Of a stretch of 64,000 bases of DNA, positions 11,383 to 54,036 are shown in pieces. Origin of the DNA: Rebecca billardiae RCC1528 (taxonomy: Eukaryota; Protista; Haptophyta); contig OZ251227.1 in the NCBI GenBank assembly GCA_965240325.2, positions 3,410,001-3,474,000 on the forward strand, written 5' to 3'. The translations under genes were made by a program, and so were the position numbers. How positions within the stretch are numbered: the first letter of the stretch is position 1; the number at the start of each line of letters is the position of its first letter. Under the pieces are notes generated by a model, which was not told the origin of the DNA, did not search any database, and saw nothing but the letters and a program-made list of their open reading frames with translations.

Positions 11383-13566
11383 ATGGCGTCGCTCGCGCGC
11401 ATGCTGAGCGCGGCGGAGCGCGAGGCGGCGGAGGCGGAGGCGGAGGCGGAGCGCCGGCGCGCGGCGCTGCGCGCGCTGCGCCTCGCCGACGCGCCGCCAT
11501 CCGCCGGCCTCTCGCGCCGCGCCTCCTTCACCACCGCCGAGCGGCGCGCGGCCGCGCTCAGCGTCGCGCGCGTCGGCTCCGCATCGGCCGTCGGCGGCGG
11601 CGGCGCGGTCGCGCCCGACGGCTCGCCGCCGCGCTCGCCCGCGGGGGCGCGCTCGCCCCGCCGCGCGCCGCGTGCCTCGCGCTCCGCCTCGCCCGCCCTG
11701 CGCGCCGAGCGCGCCGCCGCGCCGCCGCCGCCCCCGGCCGAGTGGGGCGCTCAAAGGCCGGCGGCGGCGCGCTCCGCGTCCGAGCCGCACCCTAACCCTA
11801 ACCCTAAGCCTAACCTAGAGCCGCCCTTCTCGGCGCTCAAGATGCTGCGCGGGCTGACGCGCGACCCGTCGACGTTCGTGCACCTGCCCGACGACGCCGA
11901 CGTCGAGGTGGGCGCCGCCGCGCGCGCGAGCGCGGGCGGCGGCGCGCGCGGCGGCGCCGACGGCGGCGCCGGCGCCGGCGCCGACGACGACGACGGCGCG
12001 GGCGGCGCCTACGACGGCGCGTGGTGGGCGCGCGGCGCGGCGCACGGCGCGGCGCGCGGGCGCGAGCCGTGCGCGGGGCTCGACTTTGACGAGGTCGAGA
12101 ACGAGGTCTCCGAGCGCGCGCTCGGCCGCGGCGGCGCCGAGCGCGACGTCGGCGCCGGGCTGCAGCTCGGGCTGACGCTCGGAATTGCGGCGGGCACCGC
12201 GCTGGTCGCCATCGCGCTCTCTCGCGCGATCGAGGCGCTGTTCGGCGCGAAGCTGCGCGCGGTGGGCGCGGCGCGGCGCGGGGGCGGGCCGGCGCGCGGG
12301 TACGCGTGCCTGCTCCTCCTCAACCTCGCCTTCGTCGCCGTCGCCGCGCTGCTCGTTGTCGGCGTGGAGCAGCGCGCAAAGGGCTCGGGCATTCCCGAAG
12401 TCAAGTCGTATTTGAACGGCCGGCGCGTGCCCAACGTGATCGGCGCGCGCACGCTGCTGAGCAAGGGGGCGGGCGTGGTCTTCTCGGTGTGCGCGAACCT
12501 GTGCGTGGGCAAGGAGGGCCCGATGATCCACTCCGGCGCCATCCTCGGCTCGATTCTCCCCGCTGCCCTCGGGCACGCGCTGCCGGCTTCCCGGTCGCTT
12601 TACGCGCTGCGCACGGCGCGCGCCGAGCGCGACTTTGTAAGCATCGGCTGCGCGTGCGGCGTGGCGGGCGCGTTCGCCGCGCCGATCGGCGGCGTGCTCT
12701 TCGTGCTCGAGGAGGCCGCGACCGTGCAGCACTGGCGCGCGCGCCTCACCTCGGCCGCCTTCTTCGGCGCGTGCGTCACGGCGCTCCTCGTGTCAGGCGC
12801 CGCGTCGCTGCGCACGTCAGACTGGGGCAATCTCGCGCAATCTGCGCTCGTCTCGTTCGGCTCGTTCGAGGGCGCGTCCAAGCCGGCGGCGTACGCGCCC
12901 GAGCGGCCGTGGGGCGTGCAGGAGCTCCCCGCCTTCGTCGGCCTCGGCGTGCTCGGCGGGCTCGGCGGCGCCGCCTTCAACGCAGCCAACGTCGCGCTCA
13001 CGCGCTGGCGGATGCGGCACGTGCGCTCGCGCGCCGCCAAGCTCGCCGACGCGCTGGCGGTCTGCGCGCTCTCGTCGACGGTGCTCTGGTACGCGCCGTC
13101 GCTCTGGCCGTGCGTCGACGCGTCGGCGCTGCCGCACGTGCCCGCCTCGACCGACGAGCCGCCGGACCGCCTCTCGCCCCTCTGCCCCGCCGGCGAGGTC
13201 TCTGTGCTCGGCGCCATGTCGATGCAGCAGCTCGACTCGACGGTGCGCGGGCTGTTCCACGCGCCAGGATGGCTGCCGCCCAGCGGGCTGCTGGGCGCGT
13301 GCGCCCTCTACTTTGGGCTCGCGCTGCTCACGTACGGCATCTCGATCCCGTCGGGCCTCTTCGTCCCCGCCATCCTCGTCGGCGCGCTCGGCGGCCGGCT
13401 CGTCGGCCAGGCCCTGTCCGCGCTCGTCGGCGACGGCGTGGTCGACCCGGGAGCGATGGCGCTGGTCGGCGCCGCGTCCTTCCTGGCGGGCGTGACGCGC
13501 GTCACGATCTCCGCGGCGGTGATCATCATCGAGGTGCGGCGCGGTGCGGTGGCGGTGGATGCTGCG

Positions 13567-13604
<38 letters not shown>

Positions 13605-13622
13605 GACTGCTGCTGCGGCTGC

Positions 13623-13679
<57 letters not shown>

Positions 13680-13680
13680 G

Positions 13681-13716
<36 letters not shown>

Positions 13717-15012
13717 GACTGCTGCTGCTGCTGCTGCTGTGCCCGCCCCCGCGCGCGCGCGGGGCTCGAGAGCGCGCGCTCGCGCGGCCGCCGGCCGGCC
13801 GAGCGGCGGAGCGGCAGCCCACACGCACTCCACCGCCGCCGCGCTCGCCGCGTGCCGCCCCAACCCCGCTCCCTCCCTCGTGACGCCCGCTCGCCCTCGC
13901 CCTCGGCCGTGTGCGTGTGCGTGTGCGTGTGCGCGCGCCACCAGACGACCAATAATATTACGTACGCCGTGCCCGTCGCCATCGCGATCCTCGTGTCCAA
14001 GCACGTGGGGGACCTGTTCAACAGCGGGCTGTACGACGAGCACATCGCGCTGCAGGGGATCGCGTACCTGCACGACTCGCTGCCGGACAACCTGCGCTAC
14101 CTGCGCGCGTCGGACGTGGCCTCCGCTCCGGTCGTGTGCCTGCCGGAGCTCGTGCGCGTGCGCCAGCTGCTACTCGCGCTGGGCTGCACAGAACACAACG
14201 GCTTCCCGGTCACCTACGGCGTGCGCGGCGAGCGCGGGCGCAAGTTCTGCGGGCTGGTGCTGCGCGAGCAGCTGCTCGTGCTGCTGGCCGAGCGAAGGTT
14301 CTCGGAAGCGTCCGCGAGCGCGGCGCGCGGCGCGCGCGACGCGGACGCGCTGCTGACGCGCGGCGGCCTGCCACACCCGGACGCGGCGGACGCGGTCGCC
14401 GCGCTCGGCGGCGGCGCGGGCGGCACGGCGGAGGGCGCGGCCGGCGCCGAGCGCCCCGCCGCGGGCGAGGCGCGCGCGGCGGCGGCGGAGGAGGCGGTGG
14501 AGGGCGGCGGCCGCCGCGCGCTCGCCCTGCCGGCCGGCGCGCCGCCGGCTGCGCCGCCGGACGGCGATCGCGCGCGCGGCGCGTCCGCGCCCGCGCCGCC
14601 GGACGCCGACGCGGCGGCGCCGAGCGCCGAGCTGCCGCCGCCGCTTGCCGAGCCGCGCGCCGAGCCGCCCGAGGTGCTGGGCTGGGGCGCGTTCGCGCGC
14701 CGCTTCAACGCGCCGCTCTCCCTCGAGGCGGCGGCGTCCGGGCTGCGGCCGGCCGATCTCGAGCGCTGGCTCGACCTGACGCCCTACATGAACGTAGGCG
14801 CGTGCACGGTGCACCACTCCACCTATCTGGGCCGGGTGCACCTCTACTTCTCGCAGCTCGGGCTGCGGCACCTGACGCTCGTCGACTCGCGCAACTCGGT
14901 CGTCGGGATCATCACGCGCCGCGACGTGACCGAGCTCATCCGCAGCGCGGCCGCCGGCCCCGGCGCCGGCGAGAAGCACACGCTCTTATGGAATAAGGGC
15001 GGCGGGCTCTGA
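11383..15012 (+). CDS. CLC: CLC chloride channel/Cl-/H+ antiporter (ClC-6/7, CLC-d-like) with CBS domains; intron 13534-13944
   Basis: Signatures GSGIPEVK, GKEGPMIH, FAAPIGGVLFVLEE, GLFVP, GLYD; CBS motifs HNGFPV and GLRHL..VD..N.VVGIITRRD. Confidence 0.95.
11790..11817 (+). repeat. Interstitial telomere-like (CCCTAA)n tract
   Basis: ccctaa x3, gcctaa, ccta; reads PNPNPKPN in the CLC frame. Confidence 0.7.
13560..13740. repeat. (CTG)n microsatellite in CLC intron
   Basis: About 180 bp of CTG with gcga and gtgt interruptions. Confidence 0.95.
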
Positions 15013-17792: not shown

Positions 17793-18773
17793 TCACTCGA
17801 TCGGCGGCAGGTGCTCGCGCAGGAAGGACGCGGCCTCGCGCATGGCGCGCTGCACCTCGGCCATCACGGCGGGGTCGTCCGCGGGGCCGCGCGTCATGAA
17901 GCCGTGGCGCATGCTCGGGAACTCCACCGCCTTCACCGGCACGCCGCCGTTCTGCCGCACGATCCGGGCGTAGCTGCCGTCGCGGTAGCCGTCGGCGTCG
18001 TCCGCGGCCGGCAGCAGCAGCGTGGGCACGCGGATGCGCGCGGCCATCGACTCGACGGGCTCGTCGAACAGCGAGGCGGAGATCTTCCAGGAGGGGTGGG
18101 CGTGCACCGCGCACGCGACCCGCCCCGTGCCGCTCGCCTTCGCCGCCACCCAGCCGCCCCAGCAGAACCCGACCATCCCGATGCGGTTCACGTTGTGCGG
18201 CGGCCGGAGCCGCGAGTCCTGGCCGGGCACGCCCTCGGCCATGAGCCAGCCGTAGCACGCGTCGAGCTTGTGCCGCACGTCGCCCCACGCGTGCGACTTC
18301 ATCCAGCCGATCGCCTCCTCCGAGCCCGCGCGCAGCCCCGCCACGCCGCCGTGCGCGCCGATGTTGTCGCCGCCGCCAAACAGGTCGGGCAGCAGCACGA
18401 GGAAGCCGCTCGCGGCGAGCGCGTCGCACAGGCTGCGCACGCGGCCGCCGGGGGCGAGGCCGTAGACGTCGTGCACGACGACGACGGCGGTGCCCGTGGG
18501 CAGCTTGGGCCGGCAGACGTACGCGCGCACGCCGCCGGGCAGGTCGATCTCCTCGCCCGCCAGCGCGGCGCCCTCGTCCGACTCGAGCCGCGGCCACGCG
18601 CTCGGCGGGCAGCAGCCGGCGGCGTCGGGCTTGGCGGCGCCGAGCAGGCTGGGGAAGAGGCGGTTGACGAGGCTGCTCAGCGGCGGCCCGACGACGGGCA
18701 GCGCGCACAGCAGCCGCACCAGCGCGGGCAGGAAGGGCAGCACCCAGCACAGCGAGAAGGGGCAGCACACCAT
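17793..18773 (-). CDS. Dienelactone hydrolase family alpha/beta hydrolase
   Basis: VVVHDVYG, LCDALAASGFLVLLPDLF, nucleophile elbow GFCWGG, F.SMRHGFMTRG. Confidence 0.92.
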   Translation of the reverse strand: MVCCPFSLCWVLPFLPALVRLLCALPVVGPPLSSLVNRLFPSLLGAAKPDAAGCCPPSAWPRLESDEGAALAGEEIDLPGGVRAYVCRPKLPTGTAVVVVHDVYGLAPGGRVRSLCDALAASGFLVLLPDLFGGGDNIGAHGGVAGLRAGSEEAIGWMKSHAWGDVRHKLDACYGWLMAEGVPGQDSRLRPPHNVNRIGMVGFCWGGWVAAKASGTGRVACAVHAHPSWKISASLFDEPVESMAARIRVPTLLLPAADDADGYRDGSYARIVRQNGGVPVKAVEFPSMRHGFMTRGPADDPAVMAEVQRAMREAASFLREHLPPIE

Positions 18774-19259
18774 CGTGCGCGCGTGCGGCGGGCTGCCAGT
18801 TTCGTCGCATGCCGGGTCCCGCAGCCCGGACGCGCGCAGAAAAGCGGCTCCGGAGGAAATGGACTCGTCCGCAAAAGGACGTTACGGTGCGCGCGGCGTC
18901 GAGGGGTGCTGGGCGCGGCCGCGCGGCTTCCGCGCGCGCAGAAGCGGCCCAGAAGCGGCCCTTTCCGCGGCGAGTCGCGCTGCGCGCGCGGTGGATCTCG
19001 CACAATGGCCTTGCTGGGCGGCGCGGTGCGTGCTCCGCAGCCGGGGCTGGGCTGCACGCCTGGCGCCCAGCGCAAGGGCGGGAAGGGCGCATCCGAAAGG
19101 GCGCAGCATCAACCGCTTTTGCGCTCGGGCCGCTGGGTGGGGGGCGTCCGCACGAGGGCGTTGGCCGTCTGTTCTCCCCGGCACCGAGCCACGGCGCCGA
19201 CGCGCCTCTCCGCCTCCCGGCGCGCCGGCCCGGCGCTCCGGGCAGAGGCGCGCCGGCCG

Positions 19260-20354
19260 ATGGCGCGTCGCGCGTGGCGCGAGCCGCGCGCCGCGCTCCT
19301 CGCCGCGCTCGCGCTCGCCGCGCGCGTGCCGGGCGCGCTCGGCGGCAGCGGCGGCGGCGCGCCCGCGCCCTCGCCCACGCCGGCCGGCCCGCCGTTGGCG
19401 GCGTCGGGCGGCGGCGGCGGCGGCGGCGGCGGGCTGGCCAATCTCGCGCTGTCCGCCGGCTGCTCCCAGTCCTCCACGCCCGACGGCGCCAACTGCTCGC
19501 TCGCGCTCAACAACGACACGCTCACGCACGCGCGCACGGCCGTCGAGCGCGCGCCGTGGTTTGCGCTCGACCTGGGCGGCGTGGCGTACGTCGAGAGCAT
19601 CCAGATCGAGCAGCCGAGCGCCGCGTCTCTCGGCCCCAACGCCACCGCGCGCCTCGAGGCCTTCCGCGTGCGCCTCTCCAACGGCACGGCGCCGCGCGCG
19701 CCGCCGGCGGGCGGCGGCGCGCCGGCCGCCGCCGCCTTTGACGTGGCGGTGCGCGCGGTGTTCGAGCGCTCGCTCGACCTGCAGGTGGGCGCGGTCGGGC
19801 GGTACGTCTCGCTCGAGGGCACCGGCGCGGAGCAGGCCCTCGCCCTCGGCGAGGTCAAGGTCTTTGGCGAGCTGCTCGAGCGCGCGGCCGCGCCGCCGCC
19901 GCCGCCGCCGCCCGCGCCGCCGCGGCTCGGGCGGCGGATCGCGCTGCCGCCGCCGCCGCCGCCGCCGGCGACGCGGTTCAAGCCGCTGGGCGGCGACGTG
20001 CCGCGGTGCCACGGCACGCAGTGGTGGTGGTGCGAGGCCTCCGACTGGGTCATGATGCTCTCCGTCGGCCTCTCGTGCGCGACGGTCGCCGCGGCCGCGC
20101 GCTGCGTCGTGCTCGCGACGGCGGCCGCCGACGCGGACGCGGACGCGGACGCGTGCGGCGAGCGCGCGGCCGGCGGCGGCGGCGAGAGCGCGTGCGAGCT
20201 GCGCGTGGGCGAGCACACCTGCCGCCTCGCGCTGCCACCGCCGCCCGACTGCGCCGCCGCGCTCCTCGCCTGGGCGCTCGCGCCGGTGGCGCGAGCGCTT
20301 GCGCCGTTCGGCGGCGGCGGCGGCGGCCGCCGCCGCCGCGGCGGCGGCGGCCGG

Positions 20355-20392
<38 letters not shown>

Positions 20393-23300
20393 GCCGCCCG
20401 ACGCAGACGGCTCGGAGGAGGGCGCGGACAGCGAGTACGGCGGCGGCGGCTCGTCGACGGAGGCGTCGAGCAGCTGCGGCGACGGTGACGAGGAGACGGA
20501 GCACGCGCCCGTCGGCGCGCTCGCGCGCGCCGCCGCCGCCGCGCTGCGCTCCGGGCCGCGTGGCGCGTGGCACCGCTTGATCGCGCGGCGCGGCGGCGCG
20601 GCGCGCGCGCTCCCGCCGCTGGGCGGCGGCGGCGGCGGCGCGCCGGCGGGCGCGGTGGCGCGGCTGCTCGAGGCGTGGCGCGCGGGCGAGGTGGTGTGCG
20701 CGTACGACGCGTGCCTCGACGCCGGCCGCGGCCCCACGCTCGCCGACGGCGCGCTCGCGCTCGGCGGCGCGCCGCCGCGGCGCGCGCCGATGCGGCGGCC
20801 GCCGCCGCCGCCGCCGCCGCCGCAGCCGCAGCCGCCGCCATATCCGGCGGCGCCCGGCGCGGGCGCGGAGCAGCGCGCGCAGCAGCGCGCGCAGCAGCAC
20901 CCCGCGCACGCCGCCACGCCCGCGCCGCACCACCCGCACCACGCGCCGCTCGCGCCGCCGCCGGCCCCGACGGTCGCCGCGCCGCCGCCGCCGCCCGCAA
21001 CCGGCGCCGGCGCCGGCGCCGCGGCCGCGCACGGCGCTGCGGCGGCGGCGGCGGTGGCGGCCGCGGCGGGCCCGCACGGGCTGACCGTCTTCTTCGCGTC
21101 GCCGCTGTCGATCGTGGACGCGCAGCGCGTGGAGCGGCCGCTTGAGCTGCTCGACACCGAGCGCGAGTGCCGCCACCTGCAGGCCGCGCTCGCCGCGAGC
21201 GGGCGCGAAGTTTCCGTGAACTTTCGCGTCGGCACGCAGGAGTCCATCCGGCAGGCGCTCACCCTCGGGCCGCACTCGTCGGTGGTCCACTTCTCGGGGC
21301 ACGGGCTGCAGGCGCCGGCGGGTCTGGTGCTCGAGGACGGGGCGGGCGGCGCGCACCTGCTCTCGCCCGACCGCGTGCGCGCGCTCTTCGCCGCCGGCGG
21401 CGACGCCGCCGCCCTCCGCCTCCTCGTCGTCAACTGCTGCCACTCCGCCGCCGTCGCGTCCGAGTTTGTGGCAGCGGGCGTGCCGCACGTCGTGGCGTCG
21501 CCTCTCCAGGTGCACGACGCGGCGGCGGCGGTGTTCACGGGGGCGTTCTACCTGGCGCTCGCGGTGGGCCGGAGCATCGCCGCCGCCTTCGAGATCGCGC
21601 GCGAGCAGGTGCGCACGCACCCGCGCCTCGGCGCGCGCGAGGCCGCGGCATTCCACCTGCTGCCGCCCGGCTCCGATCACTCAGAGGCCGTCTGGCCTGG
21701 GGGCGCGCGCAGCCGCGCGCTCGGCGGCGCGCCGCGCGGCGGGGGCGGCGTGGGCGCGGGTGCGTGGGCGGCGGCGGCGCCGGCAGTACCGCCCGCCGCG
21801 CCGTTCGGCAGCGCGCAGCTCCGCGCGCTCCCGTGCCTCCCCGAGGACTACTGCGGCCGGCAGCTCGAGAGCGCAGCGCTGCTTCGATCGCTCGCGCGCC
21901 GCCGGCTCGTCGTCGTCACGGACGGCGCGCCGCCGCCGCCGCCGCTGCTGGCGCGCGCGGGCTGCTCGGGGACGGGGCGCAGCGGCGGCGGCGGCGGCGG
22001 CGCGGGCGTGTGCGCGTCGGCGTCCGGCGAGCACGGCGGCGGCTGGGGCAAGTCCGCCCTCGCCCTCGCCACCGCGCGCTACGCCGCCGTGCGCGGCGTG
22101 TTCGCTGACGGCGCCGCGCTTGTGCGCTGCGACGATTTGGACGGCAGCGCGGCGCAGCTCGCGGCCGCGCTCCGGGCGGCGCTGCTCGGGGGCGGCGGGG
22201 AGGAGGGGCTGCTCGGCGGGGTGCGCGAGGGTGCCGAGCTCGCCGACGCGCCGCCCACGCCCGGCACACCCGCCGGCACACCCGCCGCCGCCGCCCTCGA
22301 CCTGGGCTGGCTGCGCGCGGCGCGCGGCGCGCGCTGCTTGCTCATTCTTGACGGCGCCGACTGTTACGTCGACGACTGTTACGCCGGCGACGGTTACGCC
22401 GGCGGCGGTTACGCCGGCGGCGGTGACGCCGGCGGCGGGGGCGCCGAGGGCGACGAGGCGGCGGAGGGCGGCGGCGGGTGCCTCGGCCGCGCCGCCCGCC
22501 GCGCGCGCGCCCCCCCGCCGCCGCCGCTGCTGCAGCTGCTGCGACCACTCTTTGAGCGCGCCCCCGGCCTGCACCTCGTGCTCACCGCGCGCCGACCGCT
22601 GCCGCCGCGCGCGACGGTGCGTGCGTCCGCAGCCAGCGCGCGCGCCGCGCCGTGTGTCATGCATCGCGCGCGGCGTGTGATGGCGTGTGCGTGGGGTGTG
22701 CATGGCGCCGCCGCCGCCGCTGCCGCGTCGGCGCTCACCGCGTCGCCCCCACCCACGCCCTCTCCCGCGCGCCTCGCGCCCGACCGGTCCATCACTGGCC
22801 GTCCTCTTTTTTTTTATTCTTCTTTTTCCTTCATTTCCCTTTTCGATGTATTTTATTCGGTGTTTGCCCATCGCGTTCTTTTGCTCTGCTGCTGCTGCAG
22901 CTGGGCCTGCCGGTCAAGGCGTGCGTGCTGCCCGTGGGGCCTCTGCGCGACGAGCTCGACGCCGCGCGCCTCTTTCTGCGGTGCGCGCGCCAGCGCCGCA
23001 CGCGCCGAGGCGACGCGCCGCCCCGCCGCCGCGCGCGCTGACCGGCTGACCGGACCGCCCGCCTTTGCTCCCGCCGCGCGCGCCGCGCTCGCGCGCGCCA
23101 CCGCAGGCGGTGCGGCCGCCAGCTGAGCGCCGCCGAGCTCGACGCCTTCCTGGAGGGCGCGGCGGAGGCTCGGCCGGGCGGCGGCGCCGGGGAGGGCGCG
23201 GCGGACGAGGTGGCCGCCGCGCAGCGCGCGCCCGCGGCCGACATGCTCGACGGCGGCGGCGCGGCGGCGGGCGGCGCGGCGGCGGCGGCGGCCGTCGCGC

Positions 23301-23455
23301 CGCCGCCGGCCTTCGGCGCGGCGGACGGCGCGCGCGGCCGGCTCGCGCGGCTCGGCGCGCACCCGCTGCTCCGGCGGTGCGGCGGGCACCCGCTGCGGCT
23401 GCTCGAGCTCGCCGCCGCCGTCACGCCCGACACCGAGCTGCGCGCCCTCTTGTGA
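19260..23455 (+). CDS. Predicted receptor: signal peptide, F-type lectin/F5-8-like domain, TM, CHAT protease, STAND (NB-ARC-like) NTPase. Exons 19260-22616, 22901-22980, 23107-23455
   Basis: NLAL...CSQSST...ALNND....ART.....PWFALDLG....VESIQI...GRYVSL......LALGEVKVFG (lectin-like); TM near 20050-20125; FFASPL...VVHFSGHG...LVLEDG...LLVVNCCHS (CHAT); GRQLE, GGWGKSALA (Walker A), LLILDGAD (Walker B), LVLTARRPL, AARLFL, CGGHPL (GxP). GT-AG introns keep frame. Confidence 0.8.
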
Positions 23456-23670: not shown

Positions 23671-24450
23671 CCACAAATTTAGTTGCCGGCTGCAGCAGGC
23701 ACGACTTTGTCTCAGCCCGCACGCCCGCTACGCGCCGACCCGGGCAGAGCCCATCCGCCCGCGCATGCACCAGGCCCAGCCGCGTCAGTACATACCCACC
23801 CGGCCGCGGCACCCGCGCTCTGTGCGCCACGGTGTCGATGCGCCCGGCAGTCGGTGCGCATGCACGAGCCAGCCGGCGGGCAGCTACGGGCTGGTTTTCG
23901 GCGTGGAGCGCGGTCGTGTGAGCTGCATTAATTCAGCTGACCCCCGGCTTTTGTGCATTCGGGAGTCGTGCTGCTACGGTGGGCGTGCCACGCGCCAACT
24001 CGACGCTGGCAAAATTAGGCGACGAAAGTGCACGCGCAGCCACACGCAGCCCATATTGATGCTCTCGGAGCAGGCTCGGGCATGCACTCGATCGGCTCTG
24101 GCTGACGGCAGCGCCAAGCTGGCGGCGCGGCGCGAGGGTGCATGCGTGGCGTGGGCGGAGCTACGTCGCACACGCACCGCGCGGCGCGCGGCTCAGCGCA
24201 CGGAGGCTGCCGACAGCCGGCGGCACGCAGGCAGGTCTGCTCGCCGCCAGTCGAGCTCGCCGGCCGCCGGGTACCAAACGTCAACCCAGGATGCACAGCC
24301 ACGCCTATTTGCGAGGACTCGAGCAATCGGGTCCGGGCGCACCTCATGTGCACGGCAGTGGAGTGGGCCAAGTACGCCCCTGGTATGGTGGCGCGCCGCT
24401 GCTTTGCTGCGCTGATATGGCGAACAATGTCGGGAGGCTTAAACTTGTGA
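23671..24450. mobile_element. 780-bp non-coding module U, copy 1, with imperfect 11-bp terminal inverted arms
   Basis: Appears identical to 28461-29240. Ends CCACAAATTTA...TAAACTTGTGA. Flanked by GGGAC on both sides. Confidence 0.85.
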
Positions 24451-24469
24451 GGGACTAAGTGAGCAGCCT

Positions 24470-26558
24470 CGGCTGAGGCCGTGAGCTGCCGTAGGCTGAT
24501 CTGACCCGACAAAAGTCGGCGCGCGAGCGCGCGCGCGCGCGGCGCGGCGCCGCCCCGCTGGCACGTGGGCTCGGTGTGCCTGGGCCGCGCCGAGTGCCCC
24601 GCACCCCGATCTCGCCCAGCTAGCTCGTCCTCGCCGCGCTCTGAGGCCCCCGTAGCAGTCGTAGCTGCTCGCCGCCGCCGCAGATCGTGAAGACCAGCTG
24701 CTGTCAGCTGCTCGCTCTGAGCCGGGACATGGGGCCGCGTGGAGGAGGCGCCGTGCGGCCGGGCGCGCGCGTGCGCGTCGAGCGGCCCCTGGGCGCACTG
24801 CTCACGCGTCGGCGCGCCCGCCCGGCGCGCGCATCATCGCTCAGTCGCGCCGCTCTGCTGAGCTAGCCGCCGCTGGTCGCAGCCGTCGGCTGAGGCCGTG
24901 AGCTGCCGTCAGCTGATCTGACCCGACAAAAGTCGGCGCGAGCGCGCGCGCGCGCGCGGCGCCGCGCCGCCCCGCTGGCACGTGGGCTCGGTGTGCCCGG
25001 GCCGCGCCGAGTGCCCCGCACCCGGATCTCGCCCAGCTAGCTCGTCCTCGCCGCGCTCTGAGGCCCCCGTAGCAGTCGTAGCTGCTCGCCGCCGCCGCAG
25101 ATCGTGAAGACCAGCTGCTGTCAGCTGCTCGCTCTGAGCCGGGACATGGGGCCGCGTGGAGGAGACGCCGTGCGGCCGGGCGCGCGCGTGCGCGTCGAGC
25201 GGCCCCTGGGCGCACTGCTCACGCGTCGGCGCGCCCGCCCGGCGCGCGCATCATCGCTCAGTCGCGCCGCTCTGCTGAGCTAGCCGCCGCTGGTCGCAGC
25301 CGTCGGCTGAGGCCGTGAGCTGCCGTCAGCTGATCTGACCCGACAAAAGTCGGCGCGCGAGCGCGCGCGCGCGGCGCGCCGCGCCACCTCGCTGGCACGT
25401 GGGCTCGGTGCGCCTGGGCCACGCAGAGCACCCCGCACCCGGATCTCGCCCAGCTAGCTCGTCCTCGCCGCGCTCTGAGGCCCCCGTAGCAGTCGTAGCT
25501 GCTCGCCGCCGCCGCAGATCGTGAAGACCAGCTGCTGTCAGCTGCTCGCTCTGAGCCGGGACATGGGGCCGCGTGGAGGAGGCGCCGTGCGGCCGGGCGC
25601 GCGCGTGCGCGTCGAGCGGCCCCTGGGCGCACTGCTCACGCGTCGGCGCGCCCGCCCGGCGCGCGCATCATCGCTCAGTCGCGCCGCTCTGCTGAGCTAG
25701 CCGCCGCTGGTCGCAGCCGTCGGCTGAGGCCGTGAGCTGCCGTCAGCTGATCTGACCCGACAAAAGTCGGCGCGCGAGCGCGCGCGCGCGGCGCGCCGCG
25801 CCACCTCGCTGGCACGTGGGCTCGGTGCGCCTGGGCCGCGCAGAGCACCCCGCACCCGGATCTCGCCCAGCTAGCTCGTCCTCGCCGCGCTCTGAGGCCC
25901 CCGTAGCAGTCGTAGCTGCTCGCCGCCGCCGCAGATCGTGAAGACCAGCTGCTGTCAGCTGCTCGCTCTGAGCCGGGACATGGGGCCGCGTGGAGGAGAC
26001 GCCGTGCGGCCGGGCGCGCGCGTGCGCGTCGAGCGGCCCCTGGGCGCACTGCTCACGTGTCGGCGCGCCCGCCCGGCGCGCGCATCATCGCTCAGTCGCG
26101 CCGCTCTGCTGAGCTAGCCGCCGCTGGTCGCAGCCGTCGGCTGAGGCCGTGAGCTGCCGTAAGAGCTGATCTGACCCGACAAAAGTCGGCGCGCGAGCGC
26201 GCGCGCGCGGCGCGCCGCGCCACCTCGCTGGCACGTGGGCTCGGTGCGCCTGGGCCGCGCCGAGCGTCCCGCACCCCGATCGCGCCCAGCCCGCGCGTCC
26301 TCGCCGCGCTCTGAGGCCCCCGTAGCAGTCGTAGCTGCTCGCCGCCGCCGCAGATCGTGAAGACCAGTTGCTGTCAGCTGCTCGCTCTGAGCCGGGACAT
26401 GGGGCCGCGTGGAGGAGGCGCCGTGCGGCCGGGCGCGCGCGCGCGCGTCGAGCGGCCCCGGGGCGCACTGCTCACGCGTCGGCGTGCCCGCCCGGCGCGC
26501 ACATCATCGCTCAGTCGCGCCGCTCTGCTGAGCTAGCCGCCGCTCGTCGCAGCCGTCG
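24470..26558. repeat. Tandem array, 5 units of 417 bp (last about 419 bp)
   Basis: Units start at 24470, 24887, 25304, 25721 and 26138 (cggctgaggccgtgagctgccgt). Confidence 0.95.
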
Positions 26559-49962: not shown

Positions 49963-50013
<51 letters not shown>

Positions 50014-51486
50014 CCGCCGGCCGCCGAGCGGCGGCGTGCCGTGTGACAGGCGGCGGGCGCCCGGCGGCAGCGGCGCGGGCGGCGCGGCGGCGGGCGCGGC
50101 GGCGGAGGCGCCCGCCGCCTCCTCGCCGCCCGCCGGCGCGCCCTCCGCGCGCCCGCCGCCCGGCGCGCGCGGCGGCGGCGGCGGCGGCGGCAGCAGGCAA
50201 AGGCTCACGAGCGCGGCGGCGGGCTCGAGCGCTGCGAGCGCGGCGCCGCCGATGCGGACGCACGCGGCGCGCAGCTCGCCCGCGCGCGGCTCGGCGCGGT
50301 GGCGGTGGCGTGCGCCGCGGGGCGGCTGCGCCCACGCGAGGCGCAGCGTCGCGCGCAGCGCGCACGCCAGCGCGTGCGACGCCTCCACGCGCGCGCACGC
50401 CGCCGCGCGCGCGCGCGCGCCCGCGCGCGCGCCGCCGAGCGCCGCGCCGCACGCTGGCAGCCATTCGGCGAGGAGCGCGGCCGAGCGCGGCGCGAGCGTG
50501 GGGCCGGCGGTGCGCGCCTCGTCGGCCCAGCCGGGCGGGAGCGGGAGGAGGAGCTCGCAGGAGGAGCGCGGGCGGAGCAGCGCGCTCCGCGCGCGCGCGC
50601 GCCCGCCGCCCGGCCGCGCGGCCGCGAGCGGCGGCGGCGCGGCGGCGGCCGCCGCGGCGGCGGCCGCGTCGGCGCGCGCCGCGTCCGCCGCGCGCGCGCC
50701 CGGCGCGAGCGGCGCGAGCGCGGCGGCGACGCCGAGCGGCTCGGCGGCGTCGTTGGCCACGCGCACGAGCAGCGCGCGGCACACTTCGCCGCGCAGCGGG
50801 CACCCGTCCGTGCACAGCGCGCGCACGCCCGCGACACGCACACCCGGCTGCAGCGCCAGCCGCGCGCGCAGCTCGAGGCGGCGCCACCAGCGACCGAGCG
50901 CGCCGCCGGCGCCGTCGGCGGCGCCGGTCGGGCCGGGCGCGAGCGCGCCGGCGTAGACGAGGGCGAGGGTCTCCTCGCACGAGGACACGCACGGCTCGCC
51001 CCCGCCCTCGCCCTCGCCCTCGCCCTCGCCCTCGCTCGCCGAGTGCTCGCTGCCGCTGCCGCTGCCGCCGCCGCCCTCGCCGCCGCTGCCGCTGCCGCTG
51101 CCGCCGCCGCTGCCGCTGCCGCTGCCGTAGCCGCGGGCGGCGGCGGCGCGCCAGCGCGGCGCGCCGACGGGCGCGGGCTGCGCGCCCGCGCCCGCGAGCG
51201 GCGCGCGGAGCTCGGCGCGGAGGGCGAGCTCGGCGCCGGGCTCGAGCGGCTCGGGCAGCGCGCCGCCGCCCTCGGCGCGCGCGCGCTCCAGCCTCGGGCG
51301 CGCGAGCACGCGCTGCGCGCTCGCGCCGGCCCTCGGGCCGCCGCCGCATCCGGCGTCGGCGTCAGCCGCTCCGCCGCACCCGGCGGCAGCTTCGGCCGAC
51401 GCGTCGGCGTCGTCAAAGTCGGCGGCGTGGCAGAGCTGCAGCGCCGCGTCGGCGTCGGCGGCGGCGCGGAGCGCGCGGTCGCGCGC

Positions 51487-51521
<35 letters not shown>

Positions 51522-51902
51522 GCCACTGCTCGACCGCCGCGCGGTGCGCCGACGCCGCGCCCACGTTGCCCGCGCCGACGCTGAGCGCGCGCCGCTCGCC
51601 CGGCGCGGCGCGGAGCGAGCGCAGCGCCGCCGCGCCGCCGGGGCGCAGCTCGAGGCGCGGCAGCGGCGGCGTGACGTGGATGCGCACGCCGGCGCCGCCC
51701 GGCTCGCACCCGCCGTCCGAGCCGAGCGGCGCGCGCATCCGCGCGCCGCCGAGCGCGCGCCAGCGGACCGCGGTGAGTCGCAGCTCGCCCGCGGCGAGCG
51801 GCACGCAGCGCACGCGCAGCCGCAAGCGCCCGCGCGCGCCGACGAGCGCGGGCGGCGCGGCGGCGCGCGCGCCGAGCGCGGCGGCGGCGTCGTCGGCGTC
51901 CA

Positions 51903-51947
<45 letters not shown>

Positions 51948-54036
51948 GCAGCTCGAGCGCCAGGCCTTCGACGCGCACGGCGGCGGCGGTGGGGTTGGCC
52001 AGCGAGATCTCAATCTCCGCCGCCTCGCCCGCGCACCACACCCACGGCGGCGGCGAGGGCGGCGGCGCGGGCGCGGCGGCGGGCGCGGCGGGCGCGGGCG
52101 CGGCGGCGGGCCCCGCAGCGTGCGCCGCCGCGCAGCCCGCGTGGCCGCTGCGGCTGCGAGCGCGCCGCGCCGCGCCGCCGCCGCCGCCGCCCGCCGCCAA
52201 CGCGCTGTGGAGCCACACCGCGCCGCCGGCCGCGCCGGGCGCGTGGGCGGAGCGCGCGCGCGAGCGCGCCGCGCCGGCAAAGGCGGGCGGCGAGGGCGCG
52301 CGCCCATCCGCCGCCGCCGGCGCGCCGCCGCCGCCGCCGCCGCCGCCCGCCGCCGCGCCGCGCGCCGCCGCCTCCGGCCGCCACTGCGGCGCGCCGCCGC
52401 GCGGCGGCACGCAGCGCGCGCGCAGCAGCCGCGGCAGCGCGCACGCGGGCGGCGCGGGCGGCGCGCGCGCGCGCACCACCGCAGCGGCGCCCGCGAGCTC
52501 GGCGAGCGCGGCGCGCGCGTCCGCGGCCGACGCGCCGGGCTCGGCCGCGCCGAGCTCGGCGAGCGCAAGCTCGAGCGCGCGGCGCGCGGCGCGCGGCTCG
52601 GCGGCGCGCGCGAGCGCGGCCGCGCGCCGCGCCGCGTCCGCGGTGGCGCGCCCGCGCAGCGCGCGCCACGCGCGCGGCACGCCGAGCGCGAGCCGCCCGC
52701 CCGCCTCCGCCGCGGGCGCGCCCAGCAGCGCCGCGCCGAGCGCCGCCGCCGCGCGCAGCTCGCCCGCGCCCTCCGCCGCGGCCGCCGCGCGCTGCAGCAG
52801 CAGCGCGGCGCGGCGCGCGCCGCCGAGCCGCGCGCACGCGAGCGCGGCGCACAGCGCGCAGCGTGCGGCCTCGAGCTCGGCGGGCGCCCAGCCGCCGCCG
52901 GGGCGCGGCGCCGCGCTGCTGGGCGCGGCGGGCTGCGGCGCGGCGGGCGGCGACACGAGCGCGCCGCAGCCCGGCGGCGCGCCCGCCGCGCCCGCCGCCG
53001 CCGCCGTCGCGTCGGGCGGCGGCGCGGGCAGCGCCCACGCGGCGGCGAGCGCGCGGGCGCGGCGCTCGGCGTGCCGCGCGCCGCCGCCGGCGCCGCCGCC
53101 GCCGCCGAGCAGCGCGCCGAGGCGCAGCGCGCACTCGGCGCGCAGCTGCGCGACCGAGCCCGCGCCCGCGCCCGCGTCCGCGCCCGCGGCCGCGCCGCGC
53201 GCGCGCGCCGCCGCCGCCGCCTCGTCCGGCGCGCCGCCGGCGGCCGCGAGCGGCGGCGGCGGCGCGCCCGCGGGCCGCGGCGCGTCGGCGGCGGCGGGCG
53301 GCGGCGCGTGCGGCAGCCGCGCGTACGCGCCGAGCGCCTCGAGCAGCCGCTCCGCCGCCGCCTCCTCCGCGCGGCCGCGCGCGTCCGCGCCGCCCTCCGC
53401 CGCCGCCTCGCGCAGCGCCGCCGCTGCGACCAGCTCGAGCGCGGCGCCGAGCGCGCCCGCGTCCGCGGCGGCGCGGCACGCGTCGGCCGCGCCGAGCGCG
53501 CGCGCGCGCAGGTCGCGCGCGCGCGCGGCGGCGGGCGAGGGCGCGGGTGCCGCGCCGCCGGCCGGCGGCGAGCAGCCGGGCGCGGGCGACGCGCGGCCCG
53601 AGCCGCGCGGCGTGACGGGCGCGGACGCGCCGCCGGCCGCGCCGAGCGCGGCGAGCTGCGCGGCGGCGAGCGCGCGGCGCGCGCCGAGCGCGCGGCGCGC
53701 GGCGGTGGCGGAGAGCGCGCCGCGCGTCGCGCGCGGCCAGAGCAGCGCGCCCGCGCCCCGCCCCGTCGGCGCGCCGATCGCCGCGGCGAGCGCCTCATCG
53801 CGCGCCTCCGCGTCCGCGCACAGCTGCGCGCGCAGCCTGCCGAGCAGCGAGCGCGCGTGCAGCGGCAGCGGCGCGCGCGACGCGGCGGTGCGCACGGACG
53901 CGGGCGGCTGCGCGGACGCGGCGCGCGCGGCGAGCCAGCCCGCGGGCGAGCCGGCGTGCTGCCGCGGCGGCGGCGACGCCGCCGCCGACGACGGCGACGG
54001 CGACGGCGCGCGCGGCTCGGCGGCGCGCGCGGGCGT

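Follow-up and report, generated by a model that had tools for sequence, protein, structure and literature searches.

The 64,000-nucleotide stretch of Rebecca billardiae RCC1528 DNA analyzed here (contig OZ251227.1, positions 3,410,001 to 3,474,000; termed the window throughout) carries on its forward strand, between positions 19260 and 23455, a locus whose sequence strongly supports the prediction of an intact gene of three exons that encodes a single-pass membrane protein of type I, with a predicted product of 1261 amino acids (aa). In this product a lectin-fold domain predicted to lie outside the membrane is joined in one chain to a predicted CHAT caspase-like protease and a predicted NACHT-like NTPase, and it is very probable that this architecture is correct and that the protein belongs to a family built in the same way. 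Taken as a whole, the locus is best explained as encoding a membrane receptor with a cytosolic protease that would be activated by clustering, a reading given a probability of about 0.55.

Little is understood, in molecular terms, of how unicellular eukaryotes regulate their death and mount innate immunity, and this extends to protists that form blooms or are ecologically dominant. The family described here is a concrete candidate, in which one polypeptide would recognize surfaces, switch in the manner of an NLR and act as a caspase-like executioner, with a sister branch that carries LRR, SPRY or ARM domains as sensors.

The CHAT Protease Domain

The cytosolic side of the protein is strongly supported, from its sequence, as holding a clan CD caspase-like CHAT protease with an intact His/Cys dyad. 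Pfam calls CHAT (PF12770) at aa 610-789 with an E-value of 1.7e-16 and 61 bits against a cutoff of 24. The dyad consists of His681 (21300-21302) in the motif HFSGHG (aa 677-682) and Cys727 (21438-21440) in VNCCHS (aa 724-729), both invariant across 32 aligned relatives, and the intact CHAT domain that an earlier reading of this DNA from sequence only had described (the sequence-only reading) is thus borne out by the Pfam match and by this invariance. The region also matches the solved CHAT protein PDB 8tl0 (E 3.1e-8), HFSGHG aligning with HFIGHG and VNCC with LNAC, while the PADLOC model SAVED_CHAT gave a weak match to the window protein (E 4.8e-5) and none to the three relatives tried. The domain is accordingly homologous to those of the bacterial CHAT proteases (SAVED-CHAT 8tl0, TPR-CHAT/Csx29 and the gasdermin-associated proteases), with the His/Cys dyads aligned. 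The window protein differs from these in that its sensor would be an extracellular jelly-roll on the other side of the membrane, in that the putative oligomerizer is an NTPase rather than a SAVED or TPR module, and in that its gene is eukaryotic and contains introns.

The Ectodomain and Membrane Topology

The N-terminal part of the protein is strongly supported, again as a prediction from sequence, as an N-glycosylatable, disulfide-containing domain of lectin fold placed in the extracytoplasmic space by a signal peptide of cleavable appearance and one transmembrane helix. All four N-x-S/T sequons of the whole protein and six of its eight Asn residues fall in the ectodomain, and the ectodomain cysteine pair C68/C79 is conserved in the orthologous contig L002 (JGI sample 3300017257), which shares approximately 54-57% identity with the window in the ectodomain and in the CHAT-NTPase region. 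The relatives likewise begin with a hydrophobic segment, and a transmembrane helix is found at the equivalent position in L002, in the relative P0002 and in nine of nine lectin-type relatives checked. The residues immediately after this helix are mostly basic in the relatives. A signal peptide and one transmembrane helix near 20050-20125 had been proposed by the sequence-only reading, and both stand to the extent that hydropathy can show them, the N-terminus being signal-like on reading and the only strong internal hydropathy peak lying at aa 264-290. The linker rich in Pro and Gly that it had placed between this helix and CHAT is present, rich in Gly, Ala and Pro (aa 291-605), and gives the window protein a spacing from the transmembrane helix to CHAT that exceeds the 230-280 aa typical of the family.

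The fold of the ectodomain is predicted from a structural model to be that of an F-type lectin, these being its best matches. The AlphaFold2 model, made from an alignment of 12 sequences, has a pLDDT of 82, and its best Foldseek matches in the PDB are the F-type lectins striped bass MsFTL1 (3cqo), lectinolysin (3lei), Streptococcus pneumoniae SpX (2j22) and eel agglutinin (1k12), all with a probability of 1.0, E-values of 2.6e-9 to 1e-7, TM-scores of 0.67-0.80 (0.80 by target) and 19-22% identity; lower in the ranking come CBM32 and discoidin-type modules. An F-type-lectin or F5/8-like domain had been read in this region from the start, and that assignment is upheld by the predicted fold but not by Pfam, in which the matches to F5_F8_type_C_2 (E 1.9e-4) and F5_F8_type_C are sub-threshold for both the window protein and L002.

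The NTPase Domain

The C-terminal part is strongly supported as a predicted NACHT-like NTPase made up of a nucleotide-binding domain (NBD) and a helical lid only. Within the first exon lie the P-loop GGWGKS (aa 927, 22038-22055), the Walker B motif LLILDGAD (aa 1027, 22338-22361) and an LVLTARRP strand (aa 1106), with the motif DAARLFLR encoded by exon 2 and the GxP motif of the lid (GGHPL, aa 1238) by exon 3. The NACHT Walker B pattern is hhhhDGxD; where the longer form DGxDE ends in an acidic residue, the window protein has Cys. Throughout the family the P-loop G-x-GK[ST] hardly varies. The window NTPase piece gave only AAA_16 in Pfam (E 0.0049) with NACHT not called, while the orthologue P0001 matched Pfam NACHT with an E-value of 4.4e-6 and 27.1 bits against a cutoff of 26.7.

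A model of the NTPase of the relative P0005 (pLDDT 83) consists of an alpha/beta NBD, into which a long helical stretch is inserted, and of a helical lid, with nothing further. Aligned by VIA-align, this model matches the NBD and HD1 of NLR-type proteins with a Z of approximately 13 over approximately 200-230 residues, the partners being NRC4, NRC3, ZAR1, Roq1, Sr35, Apaf-1, CED-4, Avs3 and MalT. Foldseek matches were weak (E approximately 3e-4, TM-score approximately 0.4), and the nearest ESM Atlas clusters were bacterial STAND proteins of the AfsR/SARP, NB-ARC and AAA_16 types; an ESM Atlas feature search returned no usable match. The STAND NTPase of the sequence-only reading is therefore kept in part, since the P-loop, the Walker B motif and the GxP lid are all present but the domain is not a full STAND module, only the NBD and lid.

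Members of the dinoflagellate type carry a helical insertion of approximately 100 aa between the P-loop helix and Walker B (approximately 91-199 of P0005:625-978). This insertion, which holds a disordered loop and the conserved motif GFHPLSDP, is missing from the window protein and its orthologue.

Compared with NLR/STAND receptors (Apaf-1, CED-4, plant NLRs, bacterial Avs and bNACHT proteins and fungal CHAT NLRs), the window family shares the joining, in one chain, of a P-loop NBD and GxP lid to an effector of death or protease type and to a sensor that varies. It differs in order, running sensor-effector-NTPase where these receptors run effector-NTPase-sensor, in being without the winged helix, second helical domain and C-terminal repeats, and, in the transmembrane branch, in having a sensor predicted to lie outside.

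Relatives and Family Architecture

Only two relatives, P0002 being one, came from a word-indexed protein search in which the cytosolic region was the query. An exhaustive search with a CHAT-NTPase profile gave 20,232 matches with E<=1e-3, of which 336 cluster representatives reached E<=1e-30. Nearly all of the best approximately 35 profile matches have a strong hydrophobic helix approximately 230-280 aa upstream of the CHAT His, and many of them have an N-terminal hydrophobic segment as well, with ectodomains 70-560 aa in length. P0002, a complete open reading frame (ORF) of 1490 aa on a 4.6-kb Logan contig, reads through signal, ectodomain, transmembrane helix, CHAT, P-loop and GxP before ending, and the same order of modules recurs in L002, P0023, the Hondaea protein GBG33794.1 and transcripts of Mucochytrium and Scrippsiella. 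In a 32-member alignment of the transmembrane branch Pfam called CHAT in 31, NACHT in nine, AAA_16 in seven, nSTAND1/3/6 in a few and F5_F8_type_C(_2) in four to six.

Named members come from the dinoflagellate Scrippsiella acuminata (MMETSP0271) and from the heterotrophic labyrinthulomycetes Mucochytrium quahogii and Hondaea fermentalgiana, and the names that the databases give to relatives are just "CHAT domain-containing protein" or "hypothetical". Several of the relatives are transcript ORFs marked "type:complete" (MMETSP, EukProt), which provides transcript-level evidence, in relatives, for the single-chain architecture. The ectodomain type of the window protein was found directly in 10 relatives. 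The window protein and P0023 share 29% identity in the ectodomain (E 4e-13) and 40% in CHAT (E 4.5e-37), and the dinoflagellate-type and lectin-type ectodomains proved homologous by hhalign (95.9%, E 5e-9) in a comparison with no shared sequences. Apart from its orthologue on L002, the window gene stands at some distance in sequence from the other members found.

All family members end, in low-complexity sequence, 20-110 aa after the conserved GxP tail GNPRxLIELASxVxPxLxSL, with which the C-terminus of the window protein, GGHPLRLLELAAAVTPDTELRALL, aligns; in the window protein the chain stops approximately 14 aa beyond the GxP helix. Neither the window protein nor any relative examined has a C-terminal repeat sensor (LRR, WD40 or TPR), as the sequence-only reading had noted for this protein, and since every member ends just after the GxP tail the missing C-terminal sensor is a family trait. 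That the window gene had been cut off from a former C-terminal sensor was considered and rejected, all relatives ending alike and the window containing no further family-like coding sequence.

A soluble sister branch of proteins of 1500-3300 aa (e.g., P0038, P0051 and P0062) carries SPRY, ARM or RNI-type LRR domains N-terminal to the CHAT-NTPase module. Pfam recognizes its NTPase more clearly than that of the transmembrane branch, calling NACHT in 11 of 17 (best E 2.6e-9), nSTAND1 in 11 of 17 and NB-ARC in four of 17. Because in this branch the same module is preceded by SPRY, ARM or LRR domains, the family reads as sensor-protease-NTPase, and the proposal that the sensor had moved outside the cell fits a family in which other sensors occupy the same N-terminal position. 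The order of the family is a variable N-terminal sensor, then CHAT, then a NACHT-like NBD and lid, which is that of an inverted, C-terminally truncated NLR. The family thus shows that such proteins need not follow the canonical NLR order of effector-NOD-sensor, and that a STAND-type module reduced to NBD and lid has been retained over large distances.

Within the literature searched, no published description was found of the family combining lectin ectodomain, transmembrane helix, CHAT and NACHT-like domain, nor of the soluble inverted NLRs of protists (SPRY/ARM/LRR-CHAT-NACHT). The architecture is widespread in protists rather than unique to this genome. CHAT-STAND fusions as such are already known from bacterial and fungal conflict systems (PMC8195603; PMC10907252). 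Transmembrane proteins of oysters with a Cys-rich ectodomain and an intracellular DED/TRADD-N carry variable C-terminal domains including STAND NTPases (Kaur et al., 2021, PMC8195603) and resemble the window family as transmembrane receptors able to carry a STAND NTPase. Some NLR-like nucleotide-binding (NB) proteins of algae, of the NB-LRR, NB-TPR and KAP types, have been claimed to be membrane-associated (Andolfo et al., 2019, PMC7145615); these differ in that the transmembrane segment is predicted inside or beside the NTPase, and the paper mentions neither CHAT nor lectin.

Gene Structure and Coding Evidence

The local GC content around the locus is 0.75-0.83, and because long ORFs occur in all six frames at approximately 80% GC, an open frame alone is weak coding evidence. 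An ORF scan of the window found the frame 19260-22616 uninterrupted. Over this first exon GC at third codon positions (GC3) is 0.92-1.00 against 0.52-0.84 at second positions (GC2), and codon-position GC stays continuous over its entire length. In the proposed introns the codon periodicity is lost, with approximately 0.65 GC at all positions (GC3 of 0.67 in intron 1), and beyond the stop, in the 3′ flank, GC3 is 0.55. The start was placed at the first ATG after the rise of GC3 to 0.96. An in-frame ATG further upstream, near 19005, was considered less likely as the start, GC3 there being 0.84-0.86 compared with at least 0.96 from approximately 19200.

The exon model was obtained by enumerating GT-AG combinations that keep the frame open up to the stop at 23453-23455, and one of the enumerated models, with exons 19260-22616, 22901-22980 and 23107-23455 (Table 1), reproduces the conserved family motifs. 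Its donors are GTGCGT and GTGCGC and its acceptors end in CAG. Exon 2 is the sole splice combination to yield the family motif GL..DAARLFLRR. The position of intron 1 is common to L002 and the orthologue P0001. L002 is without intron 2 and reads LFVRRTTRSISAGELDRL over the join of exons 2 and 3, compared with LFLR followed across the junction by RCGRQLSAAELDAFL in the window, and as exons 2 and 3 are contiguous in L002 the join is confirmed. The uninterrupted frame with two further exons reported by the sequence-only reading has thus withstood examination of the open frame, the GC3 pattern, the GT-AG borders and the L002 join.

An annotation artefact, in which an open frame arising by chance in GC-rich DNA had run together two genes or a pseudogene, would be favored by the long ORFs that approximately 80% GC gives in six frames and by a look-up of sequencing runs in which no RNA run was listed for this genome. 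It is very improbable, the order of modules being repeated in L002, P0002, P0023, Hondaea, Mucochytrium and Scrippsiella, with codon-position GC continuous over the exon and the catalytic residues intact.

Intron 1 of L002 (3626-4248) contains a run of approximately 35 T and, after it, a long tract rich in AAC/CAA that resembles a microsatellite, where intron 1 of the window has only a shorter T-rich tract.

Table 1. Predicted features of the receptor gene and its product, in positions of the window.
Feature	Position	Strand	Details
Exon 1	19260..22616	+	1119 codons, from the signal peptide to the larger part of the NTPase; donor ACG/GTGCGT at 22617
Intron 1	22617..22900	+	GT..AG, T-rich tract; GC falls to approximately 0.65
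Exon 2	22901..22980	+	Encodes VLPVGPLRDELDAARLFLR; GC3 0.92
Intron 2	22981..23106	+	GT..AG; not present in L002
Exon 3	23107..23455	+	Helical lid with GxP (GGHPL, 23381-23395); stop TGA 23453-23455; GC3 0.99
Signal-peptide-like N-terminus	19260..19343	+	aa 1-28; four Arg, AALLAALALAA, then small residues (by reading)
Ectodomain, F-type-lectin / galactose-binding-like jelly-roll fold (predicted)	19434..19874	+	aa 59-205
Pro-rich stalk with juxtamembrane Cys pair	19875..20045	+	PRCHGTQWWWCEASDW; kept almost exactly in L002
Single transmembrane helix	20046..20129	+	aa 263-290; only internal Kyte-Doolittle peak >=1.6
Gly/Ala/Pro-rich low-complexity cytosolic linker	20130..21074	+	aa 291-605, approximately 315 aa; G+A+P 0.59; no Pfam match
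CHAT caspase-like protease domain	21075..21674	+	aa 606-805
NTPase, first part	21825..22616	+	aa 856-1119; PEDYCGR lead-in; remainder in exons 2-3

Proposed Mechanism and Competing Explanations

In the mechanism proposed for a clustering-activated receptor, a multivalent extracellular ligand, which may be a glycan or some other surface pattern, would cluster the ectodomains, whereupon the cytosolic NTPase domains would oligomerize in a nucleotide-dependent manner. Their oligomerization would bring the CHAT domains together and switch on the protease by proximity, and the active CHAT would then cleave putative downstream substrates or the receptor itself to give a defense, death or signaling response. 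For clan CD proteases induced proximity is the typical means of activation, with the apoptosome and the inflammasome as the caspase precedents. STAND NTPases are nucleotide-dependent oligomerization switches (PMC8195603), and in SAVED-CHAT the protease is activated by cA3-driven filament formation or oligomerization (10.1101/2023.06.23.546230). By analogy with these systems, activation of the window protease through oligomerization is given slightly less than an even chance. An immune or cell-death output is a more tentative proposal, with odds closer to one in three, and the pathogen- or virus-triggered death receptor suggested by the sequence-only reading is purely hypothetical.

Among known receptors the nearest in layout are the TNFR/Fas death receptors, TLRs and plant RLK/RLP proteins, which have extracellular recognition, one transmembrane segment and a cytosolic death or immune module in common with the window protein. 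Death receptors recruit their protease via adaptors and the others use a kinase or TIR domain, whereas the window protein carries protease and NTPase in the receptor chain.

Several observations weigh against a clustering-activated receptor. Besides the outcome of the RNA look-up mentioned above, the signal peptide and topology were derived from hydropathy and sequon distribution only, and in the window protein an acidic DADADAD follows the transmembrane helix in place of basic residues. Both the limits of topology prediction, which cannot tell plasma membrane from endomembranes, and this atypical acidic stretch would suit a lectin-fold domain facing the lumen of the endoplasmic reticulum, Golgi or vacuole, in an organelle protease-NTPase for quality control or trafficking. 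Such a location is improbable, since the Pro-rich stalk, the sequons and the juxtamembrane Cys pair are typical of surface-exposed type I proteins and no retention motif was seen, though no systematic search for one was made.

Adverse to the receptor, too, is the absence of the diagnostic motifs of F-type lectins, namely the sugar motif HX24RXDX4(R/K) and the calcium motif hhDGx (PMC12221842). A regular-expression search found the sugar motif neither in the window protein nor in 11 relatives, and the calcium motif is absent from the window protein and L002, yet present in four relatives. With its best structural matches among F-type lectins, the ectodomain thus differs from them in being without both motifs and in scoring below the Pfam thresholds. 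Because the motifs are absent carbohydrate binding is not established despite the lectin-like fold, and the glycan sensing that the sequence-only reading had assigned to the ectodomain is not supported.

In the NTPase the adverse points are that the second acid of Walker B is Gly in the window protein (DGAD) and Ala in the orthologue (DAVD), that long low-complexity insertions rich in Gly, Tyr and Pro interrupt the domain, and that the structural model was built on the compact relative P0005 and not on the window protein. The fold match of this model by VIA-align ties with ORC/Cdc6, TnsC and archaeal ATPases (2fna, 2qen), such that STAND is not separable from these, and an NTPase profile run against PDB sequences gave only weak P-loop matches (ABC transporters and Sr35). 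A winged-helix domain was found neither in the window protein, which stops beforehand, nor in relatives, which end 20-110 aa after GxP, nor in the P0005 model, and because of this the autoinhibition and ring assembly of NLR type may not apply. The altered Walker B motif, the low-complexity insertions, the missing winged helix and the Pfam NACHT model not being called on the window piece would all be expected of an NTPase that is a degenerate scaffold, serving in nucleotide binding, dimerization or docking only, with the protease controlled by autocleavage or an inhibitor. This too is improbable, as the P-loop is nearly invariant, the domain has been kept at the C-terminus over large evolutionary distances and DGxD is the normal NACHT Walker B.

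A more serious competitor, still judged unlikely, keeps the same protein and changes its task to that of an adhesion, self-recognition or cell-wall/matrix sensor, for example in mating, in colony or ectoplasmic-net contact or in prey contact, with CHAT performing limited signaling cleavage of the kind seen in regulated intramembrane or juxtamembrane proteolysis and the NTPase acting as regulatory switch. The ectodomain fold is common to adhesion and carbohydrate-binding modules (CBM32, discoidin and SUN), the ectodomain is conserved between lineages and not hypervariable as a pathogen sensor would be, the 64-kb window holds a single copy of the receptor gene, and metazoan TPR-CHAT proteins such as TTC28 are tied to cytokinesis and not to immunity (PMC12314368). 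Against this, CHAT together with a NACHT-type NTPase and LRR or SPRY domains is a hallmark of bacterial and fungal conflict and death systems (PMC8195603; PMC10907252), and the family is large with diverse N-terminal modules.

An unrecognized "inverted NLR" class of the form sensor-CHAT-NACHT may exist in protists, namely in dinoflagellates, in labyrinthulomycetes and in the lineage to which this genome belongs. In its transmembrane branch an extracellular lectin-fold domain would itself drive assembly through the NTPase and activation of the protease, and so link recognition of microbe or virus surfaces to caspase-like proteolysis or death; this broader proposal is speculative, with the odds somewhat against it. 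Were it true, receptor, apoptosome and caspase would be contained in one chain. The mechanism, if correct, would provide an independent example of proximity-activated caspase-like proteolysis at the membrane and an entry point to protist-virus and protist-bacterium interactions.

Surroundings of the Locus

The upstream neighbor of the receptor gene, at 17793-18773 on the reverse strand, is divergent to it and encodes a 326-aa protein of the dienelactone hydrolase family (Pfam DLH, E 3e-21); the approximately 490 bp between this gene and the receptor start suggest a shared bidirectional promoter region. Downstream, also on the reverse strand, the region 24439-26049 contains near-identical ORFs of 119-124 aa (24439-24798, 24841-25215, 25258-25632 and 25675-26049), and their recurrence with a period of approximately 417 bp indicates a tandem repeat array. 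Elsewhere in the window the composition profile shows a strong negative AT skew of -0.34 at 75% GC over 12001-14000, possibly a strand-biased repeat or low-complexity coding region, and an extreme GC peak of 0.865-0.897 over 50001-54000 with a strong positive AT skew of 0.11-0.27.

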